NCBI GenBank assembly: GCA_002269645.1
Contig: NIVC01000230.1
Span: 620,001-684,000 of the forward strand
DNA from: Macrostomum lignano
Lineage: Eukaryota
Length of the DNA: 64,000 nucleotides
Direction: 5' to 3'
The position numbers and the translations under genes are program-made. A model generated the notes under the pieces. It saw only the letters and a list, made by a program, of their open reading frames with translations. It ran no database searches and had not been told where the DNA came from. This document shows positions 1-50,157 of this stretch, piece after piece; position 1 is the first letter of the stretch, and each line of letters starts with the position of its first letter.

Positions 1-303
1 TTGATTCTCGCTCTCCCGCCCCGCCTCTTACTTAGGGGCTGAGTAAGGGCTGAGCAAGGCAGTAACGTGGCCGACTCTCGAGCTTAAGTTCCGAGCGCGG
101 CCACATTAATGTCTACTAAGCCTGCTCCGTGGGCCTCAGTGTAAAGTTTGTCAGCTCCACCCTTTCCCCTCGCGCCCTCCTCTCAACTCTCCCCCTCGCC
201 CCATGCCGGGGTTTTTTTAACCCCGTATTTTCAGGCTTTGCCTTGGCACTGCGTGCAATGGTGCAATTGCTCTGATTTTCATTCTTTAGCTGTTTCAACA
301 ACC

Positions 304-1165
304 ATGGAAATTGCACGCGCACTACTAACAGCCAGACAGCTCAGAGCGGAGCTGGCCAAGCGCGGTCTACCAAACACAGGCTGCAAACAACAGCTCTACT
401 AACGGCTATGCCACCACTTGTAGTCTGAAAGTCCCACAGCCGACTCTGATGGCTCCGGCGCGACTCTTGATGCAGGAATCATCGCCGACTTGTCAACAGG
501 TGGGCACAAGGAACGAGGTGGGCACGGGGCGCTGCTGGCGAGGTTCTGCAGATGGAGGTCGAAGAGCTGGAAATCAAGGCGCTGACGCGGCGCCGTGCTC
601 AACTGCAGCGGCAGTTCAACGATAACCAGACTGCTGCCTCCCTACTTAAAGGTGAGCCCACTGATTTTTCTTCTGGTGTGCATGAGGCCTATTTATCTTG
701 CGCTGGTATATAGAGCGCGGTCAGTCGGCCAGAAAGAGCAGCCGGGCCTACCTGATCCGAGACTTTGTCAAGCCCAATGCAAATCAGTCAAGCGAGAGCC
801 TGACCGCTTGTATGAGAACGGCAACTTGTTATTCAAGAAGCAGCTGCGAAACCCAAGCAAGATTTCCACCGGCCAATGAATCTCCGGTAATGCTCAAATC
901 CTACAGCACCAGATTGATGACGGCTCGCTCATCTACACGAATGTCGACGGGTCTCTACCAGCGAGCTGAGAGGCTACCCAGTAGATCTGCGAACTTCTTG
1001 ACGCCAACTACAGCCCATATATTGCGGTGGGAGTTTGATAAAGTTTACAGGAAGCTACTGGCCGAGCCGGACTGACTGCCGGCTGTCAGTGGTTTAGCTG
1101 CAGGTGCCCGCATGTCTGCAAGCTGCCCGGCTGCGGTTAAGCCACACCCCACCCACCTGCATCGT
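304..1165 (+). mobile_element. Decayed DIRS/Ngaro-like (tyrosine-recombinase retrotransposon) gag remnant, in intron 2 of Toll copy B
   Basis: Broken reading frames give a SAP-like N-terminus (LTARQLRAELAKRGLPNTGCKQQLY*RL), a WEFDKVYRKLLA motif resembling DIRS ORF1, and a C-terminal zinc finger CRCPHVCKLPGCG/(shift)KPHPTH. It carries several stops and frameshifts. No RT or recombinase was seen. Confidence 0.5.
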
Positions 1166-1289
1166 CAAAGTAGCAATGTGGCGGAAGGATAAAAAACTAA
1201 AAGCAATTGCCTGTACCTTCCTGTCGCTGCTGTGTGGATTTTCGGGTTAACTTTTGTTTAACGCACGAACTATCAAAATAACGGAGCTC

Positions 1290-1500
1290 GAAAGCTCCAG
1301 GGTTAACGCCGTTTGACTCTCGTTCCACGATCGCTGGTTCGATTCCGTGCCCGACCACATTCATTTAAGGATCATGGCCCTTCAAATGGCCAAGGGTTGT
1401 CATGTGATTCACACCCATGATCGCCAATCTCCAAGGCACAGAGAGTGCACATGCCTGACGATTATAAAGTCAGGACCACTGTGCATGTACATTCTGTCTC
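1290..1500 (+). mobile_element. tRNA-derived SINE copy (family also at ~8156 and ~19400-19620)
   Basis: B-box GGTTCGATTCC at 1336-1346, followed ~100 nt later by the core GGCACAGAGAGTGCACATGCCTG...AAAGTCAGG. The same spacing occurs in the 19.4-kb copy. Confidence 0.55.
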
Positions 1501-1626
1501 AATAGTCATCAATAGTCAGCGGAATGGGCAGAACCGTTAGTTGTGTTACGATATCGCCGAAGGTGTTGCGCCAGGTTGCTTAAACCCTAATAAAAAATTA
1601 ACTAAGTAACTAAATTAGTTACTCAC

Positions 1627-2562
1627 GTTATACCAGGGCTGAATTTCGCCGATCAATTCGATTCTATTGTAGGACAAGTCCAAAACCTTCAGAGTCTGCG
1701 CAGAGGCCCTGAACCAGTAGCAGTGTCTGTTCTTGCCCGTTCCGTTTTGTACCGGTGGACGCCAGCAGATCCAGTCGCGGTACAAGCCGGAGATGCGGTT
1801 GTGGCTCAGGTTGACAGTCTGGAGGTTCCCAAGCAGGCTAAGCGAATAGGGTATTTCATTAAGTTTATTGAAGCTGAGGTCCAAGTAACTCAGTCCGACG
1901 CCCCAAGGAACCTGTTTGCTCAAGTTCTGCTTATTTTCGCTCTTGTTAAACTCCTGATGACCAAACACCAACGAAAAGTCAATGTTATCGTTGTCCATCA
2001 TGTCGTACAGGTATGTTACTTTGTTTAGTCGTCCCGAAGCATTGTAGCTGTACTTCAGATTCTCGAAAGCCTTTTTAACAAGTTTGTTATGGCTATTCAA
2101 CCAAGATCTGTTTTTGACCAGCTGTGCTAAAAGCTCGTCTAATGCATTGAGCGTCACTTGCAGTGCGTCGCTGCCGAACTCGGAAATGTTGCAGTGAGCC
2201 ATTGTCAGACTGTCGATATTTCTCAGAGCCAAGAGGTTTTGCACTGACACCCAGGTGATTGGCGAGTACCGAATCTGAATGCTGCGCAGATGCGTGCACC
2301 GATGCGTGATGTACACGGGAAGGAAATAAAGGTCTACCCTGTCCAAGTGAAGGTACGTCAGCTTGCAGTCGGACTTGTTGAAGTCCTTCGGGTAGGCGAC
2401 CTCTACAGTGTAGTAGCCGCCTACTCCAGGCTTCTCGGGTATTCCGAACTGCGCCAGTTTCATTTCCTCTCGCAGCTCGACATGCTCCAACTCCAGCTGA
2501 GTCGCGTCAACGTTGATGTTGATAGGACAACCGATTATCAAGACTTCGGCTGGCGGATACAC
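1627..2562 (-). CDS. Toll-like LRR receptor copy B, exon 2 (312 codons)
   Basis: Acceptor tttcAG|GTG at 2563/2562 and donor AAC|GTGAGT at 1627/1626, both phase 0. LRR motifs LSYLDLSFNKL, LQTVNLSHNRI, LKVLDLSYNRI. Same length as, and highly similar to, copy A exon 2. The next exon would lie before position 1. Confidence 0.88.
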
Positions 2563-2848
2563 CTGAAACCCATCGAATAATTTCAGATTCATAGTTCAGA
2601 ATTACTAAAAGCAGCTGGGCACATTTATTTCAGTTGAAGATACTACCTTTGACATAAGTGATTTTCTTATTGGTAAGCGCTTCCAGAATATTTTTGATGT
2701 GTCTTAATTGTCTTCACTGATGCTTAACAATGGTAGCAATAGAGAGATATGAAAGACTTGTACAGCGGCCCTGACTTTACATTCTATGCCTCATGGGATT
2801 GGTCTTCATGGACCGCGATGAGGACCGTAGTGATTTAAAAGTACTCAC

Positions 2849-3220
2849 CTTAATAGTCATCTTATTTTTGTAGTGCGCTAGGCTCAGCTGCCGAAGATCC
2901 ACTGTGGCGCAGTTGTGACAACCGCTGCAGTCAATCGTGAGATTCAAAACAACTCTGTAAAGAATTAATGAGCACGGAACTCCCGATTCGGGTGGCACTT
3001 CGAGCCGGTGAGAGATTTTGCAGTAAAAGTCATATCCCGACGGGTGGCCGGAGTCGCAGAGGCACTGGCTGTAGTTGTCATTAAAGACAACAAAACTGCT
3101 TTGGATTTGATCTTCTGGGTAATTAACTTTACCGCGGTGTCTGGAGCTCTGAGATGCAGTAAAACTTGACATCATTGCAAATAAGCAGATGCAGCTCAGT
3201 AACGCCAAGGTACTATTCAT
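2849..3220 (-). CDS. Toll-like LRR receptor copy B, exon 1 (signal peptide plus Cys-rich cap, 124 codons)
   Basis: Starts at an ATG with a hydrophobic leader (MNSTLALLSCICLFAMM). Cys pattern matches copy A exon 1. Donor AAG|GTGAGT at 2849/2848, phase 0. Identical 372-nt length to copy A exon 1. Confidence 0.85.
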
Positions 3221-4445
3221 TTCTGTTTTGGTGTATGTGCAAAATGAACTCTATACTGCGTCAATTGCGTAGAAATTTATCCAGCTAAAATGTGGAACTT
3301 CGCCCGTACAATTGAAATTTATATAGTCGCTTTGCCTTTGCAGTTGTTTATTTTATATTTTGATGAAGTTTCAGCTGCAGTGGGGGGGGGACTTGTTGCT
3401 GTCAGATTTTCAGATAACGCACCTCAGCAGAAGCCAAGGAACCCAAGTCACTACAGCGGAAAAATCGAAAAACGTACTTGGATGGCCTTGAAATTTTTCA
3501 GTCACTTTGCAACATTCAAATTACGCTCGTATAACTAACCCAACATCTTCATTTAGATGAAGTTTCGTAGGCTGCTCCTAAACGATAAGCTAAATGCATG
3601 TAAACTCTACGAGAGTTGGAAAATAAAATCCTGGAAAATAAAAAGTGACGCATTAATAGGTCAGAAACAATTGCTTTTTGTTTAAGTTTTTAATGTCGAT
3701 CGTCGACATTCTTAAAAATTGTGCAGTCTAAAATCAGAGACACCAAAGAATCAATTCATTCATCAAACATCATCGGCCACTTCTTTTGGCGAAATGTAAG
3801 AATCTTTAAAGTGTATTAACTCATTGCTCTATTTATTCTTCAATTCATTGTTAAACTGTCCTATGTATAAAAAAATTTAGGTAAAATCAGAACCTCAAAA
3901 TCAGACATAGCTACGGGCATATTGTACTGCTCTGCGCACACAAGCTCGAGTGGTCGATAATGCGATGTTAATAAAAAAGGTTTTCAATAATCAGCAGTAT
4001 TGAACTGATATAATAATGCATAAATTTATTCTTTAGCATGTACAGAGTCGTATATTCCTTGTCAACGAAACGCGATTGGGGCACTCCTAAGTATACGTCC
4101 TTCTTCATTAGAGCTCAGGCCTCAAACCAGATCGCAGCACATCGATCGTAAGTCGAAAGTAGAAATGGCGTTGAAAGCCTAAAAAGCAATTTTCTAAAAG
4201 TCTCTCTCTAAATTTTAACATTTACAAAATTATACAAAACTACGAGTAACTACAAATTATTGATCTTGTACCGGTACATGCACTCTCTTGCAATTTGATA
4301 GAACCTTAAAAATTGGGAAATCATTGAATGGGTAGCTATGACCTTACGGCTTATGCGACAATAAGGATTTCTTCTTTCTTGAAAAAATTGTTCATCGCTA
4401 GTTTTTTAACGTGAATAGAGACAATCAACACAATACTTGACTCCG

Positions 4446-4604
4446 TCACTTCCTGTACAGCACTCCGTCCAGCCAAAGCCCCAGCGCCTCGACGTCGCAG
4501 ACCTCCGCGCTCATGTCGAACCAATTCGTCGCCGGCCCGGACTCTCCGCCGTCCAGTCGCTGATTCGCCAACGCCCGGTAGCGAGCTCTCGACCGGCTGT
4601 CCAC
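4446..4604 (-). CDS. Terminal exon completing the second TIR domain (52 aa plus stop)
   Basis: Acceptor tttcgcctgcAG|GTG at 4605/4604, phase 0 matching the upstream donor. Translates VDSRSRARYRALANQ...NWFDMSAEVCDVEALGLWLDGVLYRK*. Confidence 0.65.
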   Translation of the reverse strand: MDSRSRARYRALANQRLDGGESGPATNWFDMSAEVCDVEALGLWLDGVLYRK

Positions 4605-4706
4605 CTGCAGGCGAAAGACGATTGATTTATCTCATTCATACAGATCAGTGAGGCAAAGCTACTCAAAACTCAGACCTGCTCACTCAGCTGATTGCGAGAG
4701 TCTCAC

Positions 4707-5116
4707 CTGTCCAACCTGAACTACCAGCAGGCGGCGTCTGAACGAGTTTGCAGCGAGGAAGGCTTGGAACTCGCACTGCAGCTCGGCCTCGTCTCTGAAC
4801 CAACTGAGCAGGCCGTTGCTGAGCAGCAGCACAAACTGGCGAGTTCGCTTCATCAGGAAGCTGTTGATGCGGCCGGCTTGCGAGGCGCCCTCGAAGTTGT
4901 CAGGCCAGCGAGCAGCCAGGACCGCGTCGTTGGTACCGAGCCGAACGCCTGAGAGGCGACAAGCTATAAGCTCGACGACGGTGTTTGAGCTCGAAGCTGA
5001 GTTGGCTCGGAACTCGGAGTCAGAGGAGGACTCGGGGGCGGACAGGATGAAGACCTCCGGCACTTTGTCCGAGTGGAACGGCGGCCAGTCACTGATCGTG
5101 CCCATACCGCGATTTT
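4707..5116 (-). CDS. Exon encoding a second, divergent TIR domain (likely exon 4 of Toll copy A, or part of a TIR-only gene)
   Basis: TIR-like motifs in order: PEVFILS (box1), SGVRLGTND (betaB/BB), RTRQFVLLLSNGLLSW (betaC), CEFQAFLA (alphaC), RRRLLVV (betaD). Acceptor acttcAG|AA at 5117/5116 is phase 1. Donor CAG|GTGAGA at 4707/4706 is phase 0. Confidence 0.7.
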
Positions 5117-5645
5117 CTGAAGTAATTAATTGAGCCACGTAATAGCGTTTTCAAAGTTCATAATTAAAAAAGACGCTAGTTTCGTCATTGTCTTTATTGA
5201 CTTCCGAAAATAGTTCGATTTGGCGTTCAGAACTGCGCTCCTACGAGCGTGTATTCATCCTGTGGGTCTATCTCGTTTTACTGCAACTGGATTTCACAGC
5301 ATAATGTCGTTATACCACTACACGAGATGGCCTGTCCAATCTGTTCGATACCTAGTCTGTTTCTGGGCTCTCCCCTCGGCCTGCTGCGATGTAGACGCAT
5401 TGGCTGCTGCCACGTGGAGAGTCGCCTTAGCATGCTTGGCTACGTGGACCTTGACGACCATGCTGGAGCGACAGCTGGACTCGGCGCACTAAGGGCTGCT
5501 TCGCACGTGGCGTGCAGACAATGAGGCCCTGTACTAAAGTGTTACGCTGCAACATCCGTCCACCATATTGTGCCGGTTTTGACCTTAACTGGCGGGCCAC
5601 GTGATCCGGGCCGAGTATTATATTGACCAGATCATGGGAAGGACT

Positions 5646-7916
5646 TCAATTTCTAAGAACGGACACAGCCTCTAAAAAATTTAACACTGACTTACTCATA
5701 AAATCCCATGTGCGATCAACATCTACAATAAGCGGCTGCACATCGCTTGGTTGTTCCACCATCTCTTCTGCTGCTAAAACAACTGAACATTCCGGTTCGC
5801 CGGCAGCTACCGTAGTTTCTGGAACCACTGACTGGTCAAACAAGAGGACCGTGGCCGGATCTCGGTTTCGAATGCGCTCGATGAGTCGGTATTCCCAGTC
5901 CACCGACTTGTATACGATGTCGCTCCCTGCGAGGATTCTCTGCAGAGTGTGGAACGCCTCCACGTCCTCAGGTCCGAGCTGTCTCTGGCGCTGAAGCGAC
6001 ACTCTGCGCGAGCTCAGGCGCAGAAACACAATGTCCTTGAACGGATTCCGACCTACGCTGTCGAGCTCTCGAATCACCTGGCACAGAGCGAGGTACTGGG
6101 TGTCGAGAAACCTCTCGGTCAGAGCTACCACCACCTTGCCGCTGAACTTGGCTCCCTCAGCTGGACAGTCAAAGTAGGTGAGCGGACAGGAGCACAGGTC
6201 CGAGTAGAGGAAGCTCTCCGGAACGCACAGCTCGAGCTCGTCTCCGCCCGAGGCGCTGCGCACGCAGTTCAGCACGTCGACCAGACAGTCCTGGTCTCTG
6301 TCCGACGCCCACAGCATCGCGTCGTACGGCAGCGAGTCCCGAGATGCCTGATGCTGCAGTCGCCGACTGCTCTGGTACTTGAGGAGGATGAGGACTCGAA
6401 CAACGGCCAGCAGTCGGTGTCGACGGCGGACAGCGAGCATCGCGAGACCGAGCAGCACGAGACCAAATGCTGATGTCAGAACGATCCGGACGGTCTGCTT
6501 TCGCTGCTGTGCTGCCGAGTTTGCTATGAGCTCGCACACTTTGACAAGTCTGCCCTCATCGCTCACTTGATAGTCTGTTGAGTTTCCTAGCTTCTCACAG
6601 GCCCCATTCCACTTGTGATCGTGACTGTTGGCCGTACAGGCGTCAATTATAACTTGGTCGACACTGCAGGTCATACGTTGAAAGTCGGACACTACTTGTG
6701 TAGACTTAGAGACCTGAAGCAGCGTTTGATGCAACTGCAGCCATTCTTTAGTGCAGGAGCATTGCCACGGGTTGTCACTTAGAGTGATGTCCATTAGACT
6801 CGGCAAGCAGTTCTCATTGAAAATCTCAACATCAAGTGTTGTCATGTTGTTATTTTTTAATGATATCCTTTGGGTGTTGTTTGCGAAAGTGCATATCGAC
6901 TCTTTTTTGAAACTCTTGATTCGATTGTGATCCAATTCTATCCGAGTTAGGCGGTGGTCGAAATTAAAAGCCCCGTTCTCAATGTAAACAATGCCACTGT
7001 TGCTTAATTCCAGAAACTCCAGCTGTGCGGAAAAACTCTGAGGCTTCCACTTGAAGGTTCCAGACGATATGTGGCGAAGACTGTCGACACCGTGGATGTC
7101 TGACATGTCAATTTTCTTTACTGGATAGTCGATAACCAACTGTGACAGTCTGAGTGATTTGTTTTGACATTGTAAGTTGAAGAATGTCCAGTCTTCATTG
7201 TGATAACAGGAGCATCCTGCCATGCAGTACACCCAGCAGTTTTTAGAATCCGTGCAGTTCCTGCTTGGTAGATTGTGCTTCTCGTTGCCTTCAAAGTTGC
7301 AGAGAAATCGTACAGACTGCTGCTTGGCCTCACGGAGAGAGAGATTTACTTTGCCTCTGTTTGGATCAAAAAACGTGCAGTTTGAGTCCATCTCCTCATC
7401 CGGAATTCGGGGATAATGGTATTCGCTATGTTCGGCCCACGGGGAATTCTCCTCCTCTTCGAATGTCTTCATGTAGACACTGCCGCAGTCGCAGACTAAA
7501 TTATTTTGCTGGTTCTTTGCGTACAGCACCACTCTGGAGCCCAGTGTCGTTCTCTTCGTCATAGTCATGCTGTCGTAGTAGATATGCCGCAAGTTGTTGT
7601 TGCTGAGGTCAATGAAGTCCAGCATCTTAAGATTATTGAATGCACCTGTTTCAATCGCAGTAATGCAATTATTGGCCAGCTTAACTCTGTGCAGTTGAGA
7701 AGATCTTGGCACGGAGTCATACTGGACGTTTCCTAACTGATTGTGCTGAATACTGATCTCCTCCAGTCGCTCTAAGCTGGACAGTAAGAAGTACGTCAGT
7801 TTATTATCATCCAAGTTCAAAACAAGAAGACTGGATTTTAAGCGGGACTTTGCGAACGCTTCCGGGTTTATAGTGGTAATCTGGTTGCCTTGGAGATAGA
7901 GTTCCGCCAATTGGAC
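5646..7916 (-). CDS. Toll-like receptor copy A, exon 3: LRRs, LRRCT-LRRNT cluster, LRRs, LRRCT, TM, divergent TIR
   Basis: Acceptor tattcgcAG|GTC at 7917/7916, phase 0. LRRCT NNLVCDC, LRRNT CMAGCSCYHN...C, second LRRCT NPWQCSC, TM IVLTSAFGLVLLGLAMLAV. TIR motifs PYDAMLWASDRD, LELCVPESF, SGKVVVALTERFL. Open to a stop at 5646. A perfect internal donor A|GTAAGT lies at 5696/5695. Confidence 0.92.
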   Translation of the reverse strand, partial: VQLAELYLQGNQITTINPEAFAKSRLKSSLLVLNLDDNKLTYFLLSSLERLEEISIQHNQLGNVQYDSVPRSSQLHRVKLANNCITAIETGAFNNLKMLDFIDLSNNNLRHIYYDSMTMTKRTTLGSRVVLYAKNQQNNLVCDCGSVYMKTFEEEENSPWAEHSEYHYPRIPDEEMDSNCTFFDPNRGKVNLSLREAKQQSVRFLCNFEGNEKHNLPSRNCTDSKNCWVYCMAGCSCYHNEDWTFFNLQCQNKSLRLSQLVIDYPVKKIDMSDIHGVDSLRHISSGTFKWKPQSFSAQLEFLELSNSGIVYIENGAFNFDHRLTRIELDHNRIKSFKKESICTFANNTQRISLKNNNMTTLDVEIFNENCLPSLMDITLSDNPWQCSCTKEWLQLHQTLLQVSKSTQVVSDFQRMTCSVDQVIIDACTANSHDHKWNGACEKLGNSTDYQVSDEGRLVKVCELIANSAAQQRKQTVRIVLTSAFGLVLLGLAMLAVRRRHRLLAVVRVLILLKYQSSRRLQHQASRDSLPYDAMLWASDRDQDCLVDVLNCVRSASGGDELELCVPESFLYSDLCSCPLTYFDCPAEGAKFSGKVVVALTERFLDTQYLALCQVIRELDSVGRNPFKDIVFLRLSSRRVSLQRQRQLGPEDVEAFHTLQRILAGSDIVYKSVDWEYRLIERIRNRDPATVLLFDQSVVPETTVAAGEPECSVVLAAEEMVEQPSDVQPLIVDVDRTWDFMSKSVLNFLEAVSVLRN

Positions 7917-8359
7917 CTGCGAATAGCAAAAATTTAGACAGGCACTTTGGTAAATACTACTTGTGATTGCAATCAAAGCTCGCAGAATGTTTAGCTAATG
8001 AATATGAGGGGCCCCACACCTTCGCAGTTTCACTCATTGTTTGACCTCAATTTTTATAACCCTTCGTTTTGATGCCCTCTCTCTCCTCTCACTTAGGGGC
8101 TGAGTAGCAAAGCAGTAGCAAAGCAGTCTCGGAAACTTAGCGATTAGCGCTTGAAGGCACAGAGAGAGTCCACATGCCTGACGCTTATAAAGTCAGAGCC
8201 GCTGTACACTCTGTGTGAGCGTATGTGTTCAAGAGTCGGCGGAAGAGGCAATTTCCGTCGGTTGTGGGACAATTTTGAGCTAAGACGTTGCGCCAGGGTG
8301 CTTACAACCCCTCTTGAAATTTTAGTGTAAACAATTAACTAAATAAGTTATTTACTCAC

Positions 8360-9295
8360 GTTATACCAGGGCTGAATTTCGCCGATCAGTTCGATTCTAT
8401 TGTAGGACAGGTCCAAAATCTTCAGAGTCTGCGCAGAGGCCCTGAACCAGTAGCAGTGTCTGTTATTGTCCGTTCCGTTTCGCACCGGCGGAGGCCAGCA
8501 GATCCAGTCACGGTACAAGCCGGAGATGCGGTTGTGGCTCAGGTTGACAGTCTGGAGGTTCCCAAACAGGCTAAGCGAATAGGGGATCTCTGTTAGCATG
8601 TTGTTCGCCAGGTTGAGGTAGCTGAGTTTCACCCCCCAAGGAACCTGTTTGCTCAAGTTTTGCTTGTCGCTCTCATGAAATTCCTGATGACCAAACACTA
8701 ACGAAAAGTCAATATTATCGTTGTCCATCATGTCGTACAGGTATGTCACTTTATTCAGTCGGCCTGAAGCATTGTACATTTGCTCCAGTTTGTCTACGGC
8801 TCTCTGAGTAAGGTTGTTTCCATCAATTCCCTTTGTTCCGTTTTGCACCCGCTGCGCCACCAACTTGTCCAATGCATCGAGAGTTATTTGAAGTGCATCG
8901 CTGCCGAACTCGGTAACGCTGCAATGAGCCATTGTCAGACTGTCAATGTTTCTCAGAGCCATTAGTCCTTTCACTGACACCCATGTGATTGGAGTGTTCC
9001 AAATTTGAATACTGTGCAGGCTTTGGCATCTGTACATGAGGTATTCGGGCAGGTACCAAATGTCGACAGTATCCAATTTCAGGTACTTTAACCAACAGTC
9101 CGACTCATTGAAGTTGTTCGGATAGGTGACTTCCACAGTGTAGTAGCCGCCGACCCCAGGCCTCTCTGGAATTCCGAACTGCGCCACCTTCATTTTGTCG
9201 CTAAGGTTGACTTTCTCCAGTTGCAGCTGGCGGGCGTCAACGTTAGCGCTGATGACCTGGCAGTTGAATATGTTGACCGCGGGTGGTGGATACAC
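8360..9295 (-). CDS. Toll-like receptor copy A, exon 2 (312 codons, LRRs with non-LRR islands)
   Basis: Acceptor attgtAG|GTG at 9296/9295 and donor AAC|GTGAGT at 8360/8359. The phase 0 join gives QPWYN|VQLAELYLQGNQI, continuing the LRR register. Confidence 0.9.
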
Positions 9296-9635
9296 CTACA
9301 ATGCAGCGTTTTTAGAGTGGAATTATTCAAGACATTGTTAGATACTTGGTGATGGCGGGTTGCATCACTTTTTCGGAATTTTCGTCATTGCTGCTATTCT
9401 TGTCACAAGTCGGTTGAATCGTTGGTTTTGACTTTAATTAAAACAAAAAAAGTTATTATTCTAAAGTTAAAATTCTGACCGCCAACTGATGTTTCCTTTC
9501 CTGTGGACATGTGCTTTGACAAAACCAGTATAATACCATAACCAGCTATAATAAAGACGTAAAACTACAGAATGCCACACGTTTGCAACCGAACTGATCA
9601 AAACTCAGCATTGAAGTGCAGAAAAGACAAGCACC

Positions 9636-10587
9636 AGGGGCCGTGCTATAGATTTAAGAGCCAGGGGTTAAGGAGTTAGGAGTAAGGAGTGCTCCTAGCA
9701 AGGAGTGAATCGATTTTGCGTGGTCTAGAGTTCAAGAATCAAGAGTTGGGAGCTAGGATTGTTTCAAGGAGTGCGGCATGGGAATGAGGAGGAGTTCTAA
9801 GGAGCGTAAGGTGATTGGCTAAGGAGTCTGCCAATCTGCGTACTATATTTAAACTCCTAAATGTACACATCCTTGGGTTTAATTCAAGGAGTAATTCGAC
9901 AAAATATACGGTTCAATCTTTATTACCCTGTCAAAAGCGGGAGCTAAAGCAATAAAACCACTTTAGACTACAAGCCTGCGCATTTGGTTAGGAGCGACAG
10001 GGAGCGCATTTAATTAGTTGATAGACTAGACCATAGAAAACGGTTAACTGCTATCGTAATTAATTAATTGCTCCCATTTGATAAACAACTAACTTAAAAA
10101 CCTAAGATGATTTTTTTGTTTTAAGACGGAACACATGTTTGTTGAAACTGGCGTACAAGAATGTACAGTGTAGAAGTGCATGGGGTAACATAAGCCAGTG
10201 GCGGATCCTGCAGGATTTGAAAAGTGAGGGCTGAGGGGTAGAGGCAAAAGATGACAAAAATAACACTCCTACGAACCTAGGAGTATAATTTGGCCCTTAA
10301 AATCTTAACTTGGAGTTAGGAGCTAGAAATGAAATTCGCTCCTTCTATATTGGACACCCGCTCCTAAAATTCACTCTTAATGGCAACTCCTCCCTCCTAC
10401 TCCCCACTCCTTGTTCTATAGCACGCGACAAACCTTAATGAGATCTCCTAAATTCACCTTAAAGGAGCCTCCTAGCTTTTAAAATTTAGTCGATTCTATA
10501 GCACAGAAAAGAGCCATCTGGGAGCTAAGAGTTTGGACACTCTTAAGGATTTAGGAGTTAAGAGTATTCTATCGCACCGGCACAGTG
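9636..10587. mobile_element. Non-autonomous hAT-like DNA transposon in intron 1 of Toll copy A
   Basis: 8-bp direct repeat ACAAGCAC at 9628-9635 and 10588-10595. CA...TG termini. Imperfect TIR (CAGGGGCCGTGCTATAGA vs TCTATCGCACCGGCACAGTG). AGGAG motifs in the left arm are mirrored by CTCCT in the right arm. Confidence 0.7.
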
Positions 10588-11052
10588 ACAAGCACTCAGT
10601 GCTGGACGTGAGCTAGCTAAATGTTTAACTTGCTGGTTAGCTAGTTAATGTTCTTAAAAATAGCGTTATCTGCCGTTGTCTGCCCAGCACTTCAAGCACT
10701 ACGGCAAAAAGATAGTCAATGGCAGGGGTCTACGCGGGCACTGACGAAAATCAAGGCCACAGTCGACCCGCAACCAACCAAGTTGGCAAGCAGTCATGCC
10801 CAGACCACTGACCGATGAACACGTATAGACACGCAGATACGAACTCAAGCATTCGCCCACTCAGGGTGTACAGTGTCTTTGATTTCCTCATTATCAGGCT
10901 CGTGGTTGACCCTCACAACTGTACATCGAACAAAAATATCCCAAAGCAATTTCTATGAAAGAGCCGCAATTCATGAACCCTTGCAGTTTGTAATTTTGAA
11001 ATTTAATCCACAACGAGTTTGTTTTTTAGATCCACAATTGCTTTCCAATCAC

Positions 11053-11424
11053 CTGTACGCCCATTTGCGTCTTGTCGTGCCTGAGCGTGAGCTGTCGCAG
11101 GTCGAGAGTGACGCATTCGCGACATCCGGAGCAGTTAATCGAAAGATGCGCTGCCACTCGGTAAGGAATTTCGTCGCACGGAATGCGGAGTGCTGGTAGC
11201 AGATCTGCATCGAATGTCTTGGGGGAAAGTTCGCAACTGTAATCGAACTCAGATGGGTCGCCGTAGCTACAGAGGCACTCATGGGTCTCGCTGCTATTTC
11301 CGTTAAAAACGAAATAGCTGCCTTGGATAAGTTCCTCCGGGAAATCAGCATTTTTGTTGATGGATCCTTTAGCGAACGTCCATGCCACCGCGGCGCAGCA
11401 GAGGAGGAAGACAATGAACTTCAT
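11053..11424 (-). CDS. Toll-like receptor copy A, exon 1 (signal peptide plus Cys-rich cap, 124 codons)
   Basis: MKFIVFLLCCAAVAWTFA signal peptide. Donor CAG|GTGATT at 11053/11052, phase 0. Homologous to 2849-3220. Confidence 0.87.
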
Positions 11425-33697: not shown

Positions 33698-36600
33698 ATG
33701 CTTAACTCGATTAGCCTTGTCGCCCTGCTGTGGGCCATCAGCTGCGCACCCTTCATCTTGGCCGCGAGTCGCGAGGTGAACTTCGAATGCGACGAAGAGA
33801 CTGATCTGAATGCGGGAGTTGGTAACTTATGGCGAGCCTTAGGCAGCCCAAGCCGCCTCTCAGACTTCAGACTCATGCCGGAGTCGCCCTACTTCAAAGT
33901 TGACAAGGAAAGCAACGTGCGCATCAGAGGGCGAATCGACCGCGAGGATCCGGTCGCTTGTCCCGACGCAGGCGAGACTCGACCCTGCGTGATCGAACTC
34001 AACGCTTTCTCAGACAACGACCGGACTGTGGTGCGCATCACCATTAAGGATATAAACGACAATGCGCCGGTGTTCAAAGAGCCACAGAAAGAATTGATCG
34101 TCGAGGAGGGCGATACAAATTTTCAGTGCCCGCTGGATGCGGCAACCGATGCGGACATTGGTGACAATGGAATGCTCATTAAAGGTCACTACTTCCTGAT
34201 TGGCGTTGGGGGGCAATTTTCACTAAAGCAGAGACATCAGCAAGGCGCGCTGTACCTCGTGCTGGCTAAAGGAGCCCAGGCTCTGGACTATGAGACCGCA
34301 CAGCAGCACTTGCTAAACCTGACCGCTTGCGACGGTGGTTTAAATCCGAACTGTACCAGCCAGCGACTCATAGTCCGGGTACGCGATCGCAATGACAACG
34401 CGCCGATTGTAACGCCAGACGCGTGGCCGGCAGTGCCGGACACGCTGCCCGTTGGCGGTCGGGTGGGTAAAGTGACCGCCACGGACGCGGACAGTGGCGA
34501 AAATGGCCGCCTGACATACAGCATCACTGGCGATAGAAAGTCCATGGAAGCATTCGTTATTAACGAAACAACTGGCGAAGTCCGATTGCACCGCCGACTA
34601 AATGCGCGAAGCCATCTTCAGTACGTCATTCAGGTGCTAGTCTCAGATAATGGAACTCCCAGCCGCCAAACAGTGACTAGCTTCCCTCTGAGCGTCCGAG
34701 ACGCCAACGATCACGCACCGAACATTTCAATCCTTCCGATGGTCCAGCGATTGCAGCAGAAAGGTACACCTGAAGCAACCAAGAACTCTGGAATGGTTTT
34801 AGTCCGGGAGAACGCGAATACAGGCGCCTCACTAGCTTTCATTCAGGTGACCGACGAAGATCTAGAAGACAATGGTCGCACAACTTGTCAGCTTGGTGAG
34901 CCAGGAGCGGAGCTGTTTCGGCTTACGTCGTCTGGAGAGAAAGATTACATGCTTTACAGCCTGCAATCCCTGGACTACGAGGCACAGACAAGGACTAGCG
35001 TTCGAATCGATTGCCGCGATGCCGGGTCTCCGCCGCAGTCGCAAGCAAAGTCGTGCAAATCAAAGTTGAGAATGTAAATGAGTTTTCGCCGGAGTTTCAA
35101 TCTTCATATTACAACGCCACGGTTGAAGAGTCGAACGGTCAACATGATGACAACGGTGTAGGACGGCCAGTGCTCACTATTGAAGCCATTGATAGGGACC
35201 GAGACGACCCGCTGACTTTTCAAATTTTAGACGACGGAGCCACTTCCCACGGTCGCTTCTTCGAGGCCGTAGTGAGAGATACATCGAGCTTCTCAAATCT
35301 ACAGGGGGTCAGTCGTACAACAGGTGTAATCAGAGTGAAGTCGTCAATAGATCGAGACTCGCTTCGATTGCCAAACGATCGTTTGGTATTTGTCATTCAA
35401 GTTAAGGACACACCTGACTCCGAAGGTACACAGCACACCGCTAGCGCAAGCGTCACTGTTCGTGTATTAGACGTAAACGACAATGCTCCTGAAATTCTTC
35501 AGCCCCGACTGTACAAGGTACGCGAAAATGCACCGGTTGACACTCCTGTGCTCGCAGCATCAAATGGCGACAGTCGGATCCGATTCACTGATCCCGACGC
35601 TCCCGGACCAAATTCCCGAGCTGAATTTCAACTGCTAGATGTGCGAGCCAAAATTCTTGGCTTGGAAGGTGGAGACCGTTATCTGCGGCCGAGGGAGCGG
35701 CCGTTTCTTGTGACCAAAGACGGTCAGATTAGGACAACAGTCTCGTTGGATCGAGAAGTTCATTCGGCCTATCTAATATCTGTATCTGTTGCCAATACGG
35801 AGGCCCAGCCACGATTGAGCACTACGGCTGAGCTCACAGTGATTGTAGAGGACGAGAACGACAGTCCACCGGTTTGGTCATTTCCGAGGGAGTCCAACCT
35901 CTTTGTGAACATCTCCACTGCGCATCGAATCAATGATGACGTCACCTGGGTGCAGGCGACAGACTCAGACGAATCCAGCAACATCACTTACCAGCTCATT
36001 GATGCAGTTGGCGAACCGCTCACCTGGGTACCGTCGCATGCTTCGTTTTTTCTGGCCATCGACCCAAAGTCTGGCGTGATTCGCTTAGTTGCCCGACCAA
36101 CTCCTGGCCGCCACGTCGTGACAGTCCGTGCTGTGGACGCTGACCGGCCGCAGATGTTTGTAGACACCCAGCTGATCATAAACGTTCTGCGCTACGCTGG
36201 CGACGGCGGACACCTGCGCGAGGCTCAGGTTAACCTGTCAATCATTGTTGCCATGGTGGCGGCAACTTGCCTGGTCAGCCTCTGCCTGGTTTCCGCCATT
36301 GTCTGCGTCCGTCAACGGCGTCATCAGCGATCTGCAGGCGCCGCGTCTTCTGCCGGTGGCTCCTCTTGCGGCAACGGTGGCGGCCTTGGCGTCGAAAAGG
36401 CGTTATCGCCACCGACGCTGCCGCTGCCAGCATCGTGCCAATTCGGCCTCGATGACCAGCTGGACGACTGTGGTGCGCCTGAGCCGCTGTTGTTCAGCGG
36501 CGGCGGTGACATCGGAGGAGGCGGCTGCAGCAGCGGCTGCGGTACACCAACAAGGCACCACCTGCACATGACCACCTTCTGCCAGAGCGACTCACAAGTG

Positions 36601-36747
36601 CTGCCAATGATGCAGTCGCACCATCCGCTGTACTATCCGCAGCATCAGCACCTGCAGCAGCAATCCAAGCAGCCGTTCCGCTTTCCGCATCAGCAGCAGG
36701 CCATGTACCAGCAGCCAAACATGCAGCTGCTTCTGGCTGGAAATGAG
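33698..36747 (+). CDS. Protocadherin, large exon 1 (signal peptide, 7 cadherin repeats, TM, start of tail), with a 1-nt frameshift at ~35040
   Basis: Cadherin motifs DRE, DxNDNAP, AxDxD and LDYE in both ORFs (33698-35077 and 35011-36822). One inserted base between 35040 and 35041 joins them as DAGSPPQS|ASKVVQIKVENVNEFSPEF. TM IIVAMVAATCLVSLCLVSAIVCV. Donor GAG|GTGAAA at 36747/36748. Confidence 0.9.
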
Positions 36748-37795
36748 GTGAAATTTCTTCTTATTGACCAGCGACCAATCATAGAACCTTTGCCCTTCGT
36801 GTGTAGCTTTAACCAGTCTTGATAATTACAACGTTTTACCCTTACTTTTGAGCACTCAAAGCTTCTTTATAGTGACTCCATTCAATTTTGACACTCAATC
36901 ACAGGACACACCGAAACGAAGCATATCATTGTAGAGCTTAATGTTGATGTCCGGGATGTGAAACAGAGTGGACGATTGTGCAGAGAAATCGTTGCATTTA
37001 GTCGTCCTCATTGAATGCTTCACACCTGGCTTTGCTTTCTTCGCAGCAAAATCGTAGTTTCGTCAAGCAACGTCATTAGGCGTCAAAATGTGTGTTGAAT
37101 AGGGTGAAATGGTGCAGTAGGTATAGCTACTAACCCTCACAGAATGATTGACATTGAGAAGGGATGAATTGTGACTCATAGATTACTCGTAGAGAGATGA
37201 AGAATTGGTTCTAGCTTCACTCTCGTGCTCAAAATAATTAGAAGGCCAGTTTTTTTCTAGCACCTTGTCTCTTGAAATAGCTGTACGCTAGTAGATGAAG
37301 CACAAAATTGTGAGATTTAACGCTCGGGTTTCAAATAAGGATCTTCACCAACAGCATAGAACAGGCTGCCCAGTAATTGAGCAGCGTCACGCAGGGACAC
37401 CGAGTGAGTAAAAGTGAGTGCTTAAGCCTTACCGCTTGAGAAAGGATTCTAGTTAACAAAACAACCATAGAATAGAGCCGAAAGAAGAGGATCAAGTTTC
37501 TCCAGAAAATGGTTGCGATTATGGGAATTCCTTATTTAAAAGCTGGAAGTGTGTTCTGTGACCTCGCGTGAACAGTCGGAACAAAAAAAGCAGGTTGGCT
37601 CAGGTTGCCAGAGTTGTGTTGCGCAATGGAGATGACGAGTATTTGTAGTCACTTTCGTTTTATGAACTAACGATTTGAAGCAAATGTTAATTCACTTCGT
37701 GTAGTTCGTATGATGGCTGCTATAGCTAAAATGTAGCACATTTTACGAGCGTACTTGCTCACACATCTCACTGCGATGTTCTGCTTCGCTGCCAG

Positions 37796-40869: not shown

Positions 40870-41507
40870 TCAAATGACGCCCCTGTCCAGCAAGTCCTGC
40901 ACATCATCGCACAGGCTGTCGAGCTGCGCGGCAATCGGCGATTCGGAGTCGAACATGTCGCGCAGCAGGCGCGGATCCCGGAAAAACTTCGAGCAGTTGC
41001 GCACCGTCTGCGCCGACTTCTCGCTGAGATGCCGCCGGATGAGGCGCAGCACGAGCTGCTCACAGTCGCCCAGCTGGCCCAGCAGCTCCCCCTGGTTGAC
41101 GGGCGTCTGGCGCTTCTGCATCCGCACCAGAGCCGTCGCCAAGTCGTTGAATTTGTCGCGAAACTCGTCGGCCATCGCCATCTCCTCGTTGTTGAACGCG
41201 TCGTTTAAATACAGGACACCGATTTTCAAATTGATCTTGATGATCTGCTTCATCAGCTTCTGGGCTGCCTGCCTGGACTGGGTGTGAGTCTTCACGATTT
41301 TGTACATCTTGTCAAACACCCGAGCCGACGGTGCGTCGAGGAAGATTTTAATGGCCTTCTTAGAGGCCAGCTGACTTGCGATTTTCTTCTGAGCGCGCAG
41401 ACTGAAAGTCGGCGTACTGAATGTGTCATCGCCGTCCAAAGTTGATCCAGCGACTGACGGCGAGGCCGATGCAGGGCCGCCCACTGCGCCATGCTCTGAC
41501 GATGCGC
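40870..41507 (-). CDS. TNFAIP8: TNFAIP8/TIPE-family protein, main exon
   Basis: Family motifs FSLRAQKKIASQLASK, KLMKQIIKINLKIGVLY, LIRRHLSEKS and C-terminal LLDRGVI*. Acceptor tttgcAG|GC at 41508/41507, phase 1. Confidence 0.92.
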
Positions 41508-42072
41508 CTGCAAATTTGCAGAAAGTAAGCACTAAAACATTCAATCTGTAGATTGTGCATGCTGGTCTTGCGCTCCTTTCACCGATCTATTTGTCCCTCC
41601 TTTTTCTACATTCACAGACTTGTTTTAGCGTTGACATACACCAACATTTTTTACAATTTAGATTTAATAAGAACGTATGGATGTAGGTATTTCACCATTT
41701 ATATGATCGAAATTTGTTCCTTAAGGGTATCAATCAGCGTTCCAATGCTAAGTTTGCCAAGTCAAGAGAATTTTCAGAGTACTAACGCTTAACGAAGTTG
41801 CAATATTATTTGCACAGCCATTAGTGGTAAAGAAAGACTGCATAGATAAGATTAGAACAAGTTAGGATTATAATTATTACCCTGTACAGCTAGCTATCCA
41901 AGTTTGACAGGATTTCTGTCAAAAAAATTCTCAGCACAATTAGTCATTATTATTACGGGTCGAGCTAAAACTAAAACCGAAGTACATCCAACACGTGAGT
42001 CACCACCAGCCGCGCCAGTATATATATTAGATAAAAACGCTTTAAATGCAAATGTGCTTAAGGGGCCGACAC

Positions 42073-49061: not shown

Positions 49062-49589
49062 CTGCCAGAGCCATGCATTGGTTGGACGAGATATACTCGT
49101 TCATTGAGAGGCATCGTTAATGACTGAGAACGTATGTAAGAACTCGATAAATTGCTACACGGGATAGCAAACTACGCTCGTAGTTGCAACAAAAACAACA
49201 ACAGAATACGCAGTTAGCGTCACAGGGCGCGCTTCAAGGCCAGATCGCGAATGAACGCCATGCCGTCGGCCAAAACTGGGGCGCCGGCGTCAGCCAGCAG
49301 GCAGTCGACAAAACGCCGAGTGCGCGCCTGCCCCCGCCGGTAGGGTGCCTACACCTCGCGCCCTGGTGCTAAAGCCCCTGGTGCTAAAGCCCCCGGTGCT
49401 AAAGCCCCTGGTGCTAAAGCCCCTGGTGCTAAAGCCCCTTCAAGGGCGCCAGGTAGTTGCAACTGACCCAAGCTTTCAAGCTCGGGGTCCCAACCTCCAT
49501 CTTGTATCCCAAATCCTCTGCTTAACTTGCTCGGCTAGCAACACCTCTAGGAATCCTAATTTGTTCTACTCTAAGTCTATGTCAATTAC

Positions 49590-50061
49590 CTCCATAGTGA
49601 TGCAAAATGAAGTACCGCAGGGCGTCCGATCTTTGCAGTGGTTGTTTGTACCGGCTATACATATCCAGGTACTGGGGGTAGTTGTCCCGCATAAAGGCGG
49701 TCGCATCTGCATCCGTCCACAACACATAGCTGAAGCCGCCCAGCGCAGTATTGATCAGCAGGCAAGGAATCACTGCGAACCGGTACGCTACGGGAATGTC
49801 AGCTGTTGAATAGATCTGGTGCAGCAACGGCGAGATTCGTCCGTCGCAGTTCTTCGAGCGTAGAAGGCTTCGCTTCGATGAATTCTGCATCGACAGGAGA
49901 GTAAGCGAAGTGCTAAGGCGATGCCGTATGGCCTTCTCGACTTCCGCGTCAAGCATGAACTCTGCAGGTATTCGCCGAGACTCGCTGGCTATTTGATCAA
50001 TAATCGACCACGGCTCCAGCATTCTGATCAGTTGGTCCCGTCTTGAAACTTGACGCCATTC

Positions 50062-50100
<39 letters not shown>

Positions 50101-50157
50101 CAGAAGCAGAACAGTCAGTGGCCGGTTCCGGTACAGCCGCACTGACAGAAGTCGCAT
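49590..50157 (-). CDS. GT32 (Gly_transf_sug, OCH1/SUR1-like) glycosyltransferase exon 1, type II membrane protein
   Basis: Poly-Leu signal anchor. Motifs ISPLLHQIY, LWTDADA, QRSDALRYFILHHYGG. Donor G|GTAATT at 49590/49589. The four-exon model gives 412 aa. Confidence 0.9.

Follow-up and report, generated by a model that had tools for sequence, protein, structure and literature searches.

A window of 64,000 nucleotides (nt) from the flatworm Macrostomum lignano (contig NIVC01000230.1, positions 620,001 to 684,000, forward strand) carries a five-exon gene on its minus strand, between 11424 and 4446, that encodes a predicted Toll-like receptor (TLR). Positions given below are those of this whole stretch unless another contig is named. 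Taken as a whole, the locus probably represents an intact Toll-like receptor gene, the tail of which consists of a degenerate TIR domain, a variable acidic linker and a second conserved, very divergent TIR-like module.

The five exons (Table 1), when joined, give an open reading frame (ORF) of 4098 nt, that is 1365 codons for 1365 amino acids (aa), which stays in frame throughout and has its sole stop codon at the end. All four introns are GT-AG. The model had been proposed from the letters of the DNA only (hereafter the sequence-only reading), and its five exons, 4098 nt and 1365 aa were correct, as were the 102-nt intron and the terminal exon that it placed at the 3' end (4706-4605 and 4604-4446). 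At the third junction, the claimed GTAAGT donor at 5696/5695, in phase 1 and 50 nt before the read-through stop, was found at exactly these coordinates, and the claimed phase-1 acceptor at 5117/5116 (...ttacttcag|AA) does restore the frame, with the junction peptide WDFM-K-NRGMGT. Reading through the exon 3 donor instead adds 16 extra codons and gives a 1192-aa product.

A protein search with the full model returned three M. lignano proteins far above all other matches. P0001 (BOX15_Mlig017824g1, GenBank NIVC01001362.1; 1383 aa) shows 56% identity at 97% query coverage, P0002 (UniProt A0A1I8HAC1; 1330 aa) 57% identity at 97% coverage, and P0003 (UniProt A0A1I8HBV3; 1068 aa), a read-through form, 56% identity at 59% coverage. 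The next matches, beyond Macrostomum, were arthropod Tollo, Toll-6, Toll-7, chaoptin and artichoke, at 21-31% identity. P0001 and P0002 cover the C-terminal module too, in the layout LRR-transmembrane helix (TM)-domain-linker-domain of the window gene; fused proteins of this kind are on deposit for both M. lignano paralogs. On M. lignano contig NIVC01001362.1 (L001 below), which encodes P0001, exons 5925-7235, 8115-10362, 10586-11004 and 11241-11414 translate exactly to that protein, and the exon 1/2 junction of the window gene is colinear with P0001 and P0002, with zero indels. The database entries are uncharacterised and carry the names 'hypothetical protein' or 'TIR domain-containing protein', the latter for P0002 and P0003 in UniProt. 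Neither the exact 1365-aa nor the exact 1192-aa product was found in a collection of 15 billion proteins, and no paper on Mlig017824 came up in a literature search. The gene models are thus already public, and the family is present in databases while undescribed in the literature searchable here. As judged from these comparisons, the window gene is an intact member of a lineage-specific, tandemly duplicated family of protostome-type Toll-like receptors.

A tandem paralog (gene B) lies 1.2 kb downstream of the window gene (gene A). Its exon 2 shares 73% aa identity with exon 2 of gene A, and the donor AAC|GTGAGT is common to both; intron 2 of gene B is longer than 1.6 kb and passes the window start, placing the gene B tail outside the window. 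Intron 1 of gene A is missing in the paralog P0001 (L001 5925-7235), reflecting an intron gain or loss inside the family.

The window protein is predicted to have type I membrane topology: a signal peptide leads into an ectodomain of ~890 aa, which is followed by one TM and a cytoplasmic tail of 430 aa. Only two hydropathy peaks occur along the 1365 aa, at aa 1-19 (the signal peptide) and ~910-935 (the TM), and all 17 N-glycosylation sequons (N-X-S/T) are N-terminal to the TM. Pfam matches to LRR_8 (3.8e-31), LRR_4 (8.9e-18) and LRR_1 (7.7e-13) account for the repeats. Inspection of motifs revealed two Cys clusters in the ectodomain, at aa 578-686 (CDC...C, then C..C.C...C) and aa 822-897 (CSC...C..C), while the Pfam LRRCT and LRRNT models gave no match on the ectodomain. 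This arrangement of Cys clusters is the protostome (P-type) or multiple cysteine cluster (mcc) plan. The order of domains given in the sequence-only reading, SP-LRR-LRRCT/NT-LRR-LRRCT-TM-TIR-linker-TIR (SP, signal peptide), holds as a layout and is the same in P0001 and P0002; its naming of the two tail segments as TIR was not borne out by PF01582 or PF13676, both of which are silent.

The tail segments were compared with a Toll-TIR profile built from 55 canonical TIR domains among the matches of the full-model search. Segment 1 ('TIR1') scored 12.1 bits on the corresponding hidden Markov model (HMM). Profile alignment by hhalign gave P 9.3e-5 and a probability of 59% over 73 columns, from strand A to strand C, and the score was reached by none of 300 shuffled sequences. 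In the reverse search, canonical TIR domains, 5% of the residues searched, contained 14 of the 25 top weak matches. Furthermore, phmmer aligns the full-length protein colinearly with canonical Tolls, starting in the ectodomain, crossing the TM and stopping within their TIR domains. UniProt gives the name 'TIR domain-containing protein' even to the read-through P0003, which suggests that some profile outside Pfam matches segment 1. It is fairly likely, from these similarities, that segment 1 is a degenerate TIR.

Segment 2 ('TIR2'), at residues ~1185-1365, comes from the last two exons. It is a conserved alpha/beta module, ~175 aa long, and is separated from segment 1 by a variable, acidic linker of ~60 aa. 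It scored 6.9 bits on the Toll-TIR HMM, with an hhalign P of 3.3e-4 and a probability of 38% over 49 columns, from helix B to strand D; again 0/300 shuffles reached the score, and 15 of the 25 top weak matches of the reverse search lay inside canonical TIR domains (the same 5% of residues). In the extended hhalign alignment, box 1 corresponds to EVFILS, the BB loop to RWPDNFEG, strand C/helix C to LLLSNGLLSW...E, strand D to LLVVQVG and box 3 to NWFD; posterior confidence is low except in the stretch from strand C to strand D. Segment 2 also has a Glu four residues past the conserved Trp, where NADase TIRs have their catalytic residue; segment 1 lacks it. Both segments, when aligned in this extended way, follow the TIR boxes colinearly from the first to the third, at low posterior confidence outside the core. 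There is about an even chance, on this evidence, that segment 2 is a TIR-like alpha/beta module.

Several results weigh against two TIR domains in the tail. Neither segment matched any family in Pfam, NCBIfam or PADLOC, and PF01582 and PF13676, the two Pfam TIR models named for this purpose in the sequence-only reading, were silent on both even at E <= 10; the precomputed Pfam lists of P0001-P0003 hold LRR families only. No chain of the PDB, TIRs included, was matched by either segment at the sequence level, in single-sequence or in profile searches. Nor do the two segments resemble one another (hhalign P 0.2, 8 columns aligned). When 1.84 billion representatives were searched exhaustively by phmmer with contiguous exon 4, only P0121 and P0122 were matched, with no credible match outside Macrostomum. 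P0122, a low-complexity 'SSPSSSS' repeat protein, was rejected as a relative. As exon 4 has no relatives outside Macrostomum in that search, segment 2 is an orphan at the level of sequence. A word-index homology search with the tail alone, or with a four-sequence alignment of segment 2, returned no matches; since the same search misses P0001 and P0002, which are >90% identical over the C-terminal 180-460 residues, its null result reflects a limit of the index and not an absence of relatives, and negatives from this index for C-terminal domains of long proteins deserve no trust.

Structure prediction was of little help in deciding between folds. AlphaFold2 models of the P0002 tail as a single sequence and of segment 2 with a four-sequence alignment reached a predicted local distance difference test (pLDDT) of 37 and 37.6, respectively, too low for use, and the strands that DSSP assigned to them alternate with helices. 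Foldseek with the low-confidence segment 2 model found generic alpha/beta matches only, at E >= 0.67 and without a TIR; with the equally low-confidence whole-tail model nine TIR structures were among the top 50, none at E < 0.03 and none assignable to one half of the tail. Neither set of Foldseek matches counts as evidence. At pLDDT ~37 the fold check suggested for the sequence-only reading thus yielded neither a TIR fold nor a different one. What survives of its claim of two tandem TIRs is the presence of two cytoplasmic modules in a fused tail, with weak similarity to a TIR profile; neither of them passes any curated or PDB TIR search.

The strongest alternative accepts the gene model and holds that the C-terminal module is not a TIR, being instead a Macrostomum-specific alpha/beta domain of other or unknown fold behind a single degenerate TIR, i.e. 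an orphan effector or docking domain. It agrees with the failure of segment 2 to match any curated model or PDB sequence, with its zero relatives outside Macrostomum in the exhaustive search, with its dissimilarity to segment 1 and with the generic GTPase or alpha/beta folds returned by Foldseek. Moreover, the TIR similarity of segment 2 is local, confined to 49-54 columns of a strand-helix-strand unit that many Rossmann-like or flavodoxin-like domains could mimic. However, the hhalign score of segment 2 is above 300/300 shuffles, the match lies in the correct register (box 1, BB-loop region, the S..W...E motif after strand C, strand D and the box 3-like W), its weak reverse matches concentrate in canonical TIRs (15/25, against 5% of residues), and its secondary structure is predicted to alternate strand and helix as in TIR. 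A non-TIR module is therefore a possible reading, and we consider it the less likely one.

In L001 the third junction reads ...ACGA|GTAAGT in phase 1, so that donor, phase and final exon pair match those of the window gene. The read-through tail of L001, SKYNCQSFL*, is the C-terminus of P0003. It is unrelated to that of the window gene apart from 'SK', which is common to both because GTAAGT forces those residues; the tails are short and unconserved. The M. lignano GenBank annotation derives from genome-guided StringTie/TACO RNA-seq assemblies, which were split at trans-splice and poly(A) sites known from experimental mapping (PMC5730564), and since the annotation of P0001 is of this origin, the junction has transcript support in a paralog. 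For the junction of the window gene such support would come by analogy with P0001 and not from this locus, a weak point of the fused model here. Across exons 4 and 5, the window gene and L001 differ at 17 of 130 synonymous and 18 of 389 non-synonymous sites (Fisher p = 0.0016), a pattern by which both exons are judged to be under purifying selection in the predicted frame.

It is improbable, by comparison, that exons 4 and 5 form a separate downstream cistron. The receptor mRNA would then be polyadenylated within 'intron 3' to give the 1192-aa, one-TIR protein, and the AG at 5117 would be a spliced-leader acceptor for a small protein starting at the ATG at 5105-5103. The AATAAA at 5198-5193, 76 nt 5' of the acceptor, and the in-frame ATG 11 nt 3' of it do resemble an intercistronic arrangement, and M. 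lignano trans-splices ~39% of its genes, with ~7% of assembled transcripts being multi-gene precursors (PMC5730564). In addition, the read-through product of a paralog is deposited (P0003), and in the chimeric model P0121 neither TIR1 nor LRRs can be recognised upstream of its copy of the module. Against this, the ATG at 5105-5103 occurs in the window copy only, P0001, P0002 and P0121 having no Met before strand A, and intron 3 of L001 offers only the variant ATTAAA, 155 nt from the acceptor. The phase-1 pairing of donor and acceptor is conserved in L001, and a transcript-based annotation that cuts at mapped trans-splice sites leaves P0001 as one gene (PMC5730564). It is less probable still that annotation or assembly produced the fused model artificially, or that the gene is a decaying pseudogene copy, the frame being open by accident: the exact window products are missing from the protein collection, and Macrostomum has redundant assemblies and some chimeric models on deposit (P0121), but the frame is open over all 4098 nt with canonical splice sites, both tail modules show purifying selection, and the layout is common to two separately deposited paralog models.

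By virtue of the AATAAA and the exon 4 ATG, the window copy might be trans-spliced or yield a short isoform that has a single cytoplasmic domain. The last exon has a third copy at L001 20519-20718 on the minus strand, tail-to-tail with the P0001 gene and ~9 kb from it. P0121 (2297 aa) is a chimeric model of that L001 strand and includes an antisense translation of the P0001 tail; upstream of its segment 2 copy is a C2H2 zinc-finger stretch, not LRR or TIR1. Inspection of the linker by eye showed a TRAF6-type PxExx(acidic/aromatic) motif in P0002 only; being unconserved, it was dropped.

Protein identities among the window protein, P0001 and P0002 differ sharply between regions. They amount to 26-52% in the ectodomain, 83-87% in the TM, 96-98% in segment 1, 37-48% in the linker and 91-97% in segment 2. 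At the DNA level, similarity between the window gene and L001 is restricted to two tracts, ~87-91% identical, at 6561-5716 (L001 9500-10348) and 5095-4454 (L001 10616-11391), the second of which takes in intron 4; exon 4 has ~91% nucleotide identity to L001 10616-11066. No similarity was found between the two DNAs in the linker end, intron 3 or the 3' untranslated region. Synonymous divergence (dS) between the two genes reaches saturation in the ectodomain. It is 0.12 both for TM-segment 1 and for exon 4, and 0.21 for exon 5, where the non-synonymous value (dN) is 0.043. Values of dS this low in the tail go beyond what selection on the protein alone would give, pointing to gene conversion or exon exchange that has homogenised the tails of paralogs as their ectodomains diverged. 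This suggests concerted evolution (gene conversion) of the signalling tail, as read from a single DNA pair, window and L001. A look-up of contigs encoding P0002 and P0121 returned none, which left L001 as the one paralogous DNA locus for comparison.

Elsewhere in the window, three further candidate genes were recognised (Table 1). The two cadherin-like ORFs are probably split by a short intron or a frame change near 35011-35077. Long microsatellite or minisatellite tracts occupy 15.5-17.1, 18.2-18.6, 24.6-25.1, 39.7-40.2, 55.2-55.6 and 62.1-62.6 kb, where ORFs read CLSV, SLLS, YLSI and similar repeats, and strong GC skew is present at 16-18 kb and 56-64 kb. An Rfam scan of the window gave no match.

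Table 1. Coordinates of the receptor gene (gene A), its parts and the neighbouring features in the window.
Feature	Position	Strand	Description
Exon 1	11053..11424	-	aa 1-124; start codon, signal peptide aa 1-19 (hydropathy), Cys-containing N-terminal part; GT donor at 11052
Intron 1	9296..11052	-	1757 nt, GT...AG; between aa 124 and 125
Exon 2	8360..9295	-	aa 125-436; N-terminal LRR region (Pfam LRR_8, LRR_4, LRR_1)
Intron 2	7917..8359	-	443 nt, GTGAGT...CAG
Exon 3	5696..7916	-	LRRs, internal Cys cluster C578-C686, further LRRs, membrane-proximal Cys cluster C822-C897, TM, segment 1, most of linker
Transmembrane helix	6420..6488	-	aa ~913-935, then RRRHR; sole internal hydropathy peak
Segment 1 ('TIR1')	5835..6329	-	aa 966-1130; degenerate TIR-like domain at Toll TIR position
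Donor of intron 3	5690..5695	-	GTAAGT, phase 1, directly after exon 3 end 5696
Read-through stop of exon 3	5646..5648	-	50 nt past exon 3 end
Intron 3	5117..5695	-	579 nt; AATAAA at 5198-5193, 76 nt 5' of acceptor
Exon 4	4707..5116	-	Linker end and most of segment 2 ('TIR2'); conserved core from ~5095 (SDWPPFHSDK)
Intron 4	4605..4706	-	102 nt, phase 0, GTGAGA...CAG; partly conserved with paralog intron
Exon 5	4446..4604	-	Last 52 aa of segment 2; stop codon 4448-4446
Candidate poly(A) signal	4025..4030	-	First AATAAA past the stop codon, ~420 nt downstream; motif match only
Tandem paralog (gene B)	1..3220	-	Exon 1 ~3220-2800, exon 2 ~2592-1624
Cadherin/protocadherin-like gene	33698-36822	+	Two overlapping long ORFs; Pfam Cadherin 1.6e-35 and 1.7e-18; signal peptide, TM
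TNFAIP8-like protein	40870-41544	-	Pfam PF05527, 1.7e-48, full-length match
ORF with DXD sugar-binding glycosyltransferase region	49582-50157	-	PF04488, 1.6e-08; preceded by a poly-Leu stretch

If the window gene is a receptor of the kind favoured here, ligand-driven dimerisation of the variable ectodomains would bring the two conserved tail modules together, and these modules may serve as a shared signalling cassette through homotypic assembly of the TIR type. Segment 2, the distal module, could offer downstream partners a second platform within the receptor itself; an adaptor or effector TIR of the receptor's own is purely inferential. Where the 5696->5116 splice is skipped, by read-through or by use of the intronic AATAAA, a short isoform with the first module only might result. 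Concerted evolution would hold the tail cassette near-identical among the paralogs as the ectodomains diversify.

Flatworms are reported to be without TLRs (PMC8609888; PMC10279657; PMC7958881), and zero TLRs were counted in M. lignano (PMC8609888). Published TLR surveys pick their candidates by HMM searches with TIR profiles. M. lignano scored 0 in that count because the tail of this family fails TIR models; with a full Toll ectodomain-TM plan and such a tail, its members would be counted as 'LRR-only'. What can be defended as new is a Toll-like family, specific to this lineage and highly divergent, that carries an additional conserved module in its tail within a phylum said to have no TLRs. 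Should the tail modules be real TIRs, 'TLR loss in flatworms' would need qualifying for the earliest-branching flatworm model, and M. lignano, which is transgenic and tractable by RNA interference, would provide a system for studying the function of a Toll with a fused second TIR; should the second module not be a TIR, a new signalling domain would have been found attached to a Toll-like receptor. More tentatively, Macrostomum may have kept TLRs as a tandemly expanded family in which the TIR diverged past standard models, a second, orphan TIR-like module serves as built-in adaptor or effector, and the cassette is homogenised by gene conversion while the ectodomains diversify. Such a design for receptor diversification, doubtful as it is at present, would recall that of immune receptor families, and would occur in a phylum believed to have no TLRs. 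The advance would stay modest until function or fold is shown, the twin-domain architecture having a precedent and the gene models being public.

That precedent comes from bivalves, in which Tolls with two TIR domains ('twin-TIR', 'SPP-2TIR') have been described (PMC10279657; PMC5845394), so that a two-TIR architecture is not in itself new. The twin-TIR/SPP-2TIR mccTLRs of Crassostrea, Mytilus and Hyriopsis resemble the window gene in their mcc LRR ectodomain, one TM and two tandem cytoplasmic domains. However, each of their two domains is an ordinary TIR, recognisable as such, and the pair cluster together as mutual duplicates (PMC10279657), whereas in the window gene no segment passes a TIR model and the two are mutually dissimilar; the window gene does not show the features that define twin-TIR receptors.

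The arthropod 'long' Tolls (Tollo/Toll-8, Toll-6, Toll-7) are the best long-coverage matches outside Macrostomum, at 21-26% identity over 35-62% of the query, and are colinear with the window protein in ectodomain plan, TM and the position of the first cytoplasmic domain. They differ in having one canonical TIR, which scores ~150-220 bits on the Toll-TIR profile as compared with 12 bits for segment 1, and their C-terminal extensions are unrelated to segment 2. In planarians the TIR adaptors MyD88 and SARM have been reported, adaptors of this type being separate soluble proteins (PMC7958881). Segment 2, if a TIR, would take the role of the second TIR platform that is recruited to the receptor TIR; it is unlike MyD88 and SARM in having no death domain, SAM or ARM, and has no detectable sequence relationship to adaptor TIRs. 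The closest counterparts of the window gene are P0001 and P0002, which share its signal peptide, LRRs, Cys clusters, TM, segment 1, linker and segment 2, with tail modules that are 91-98% identical.

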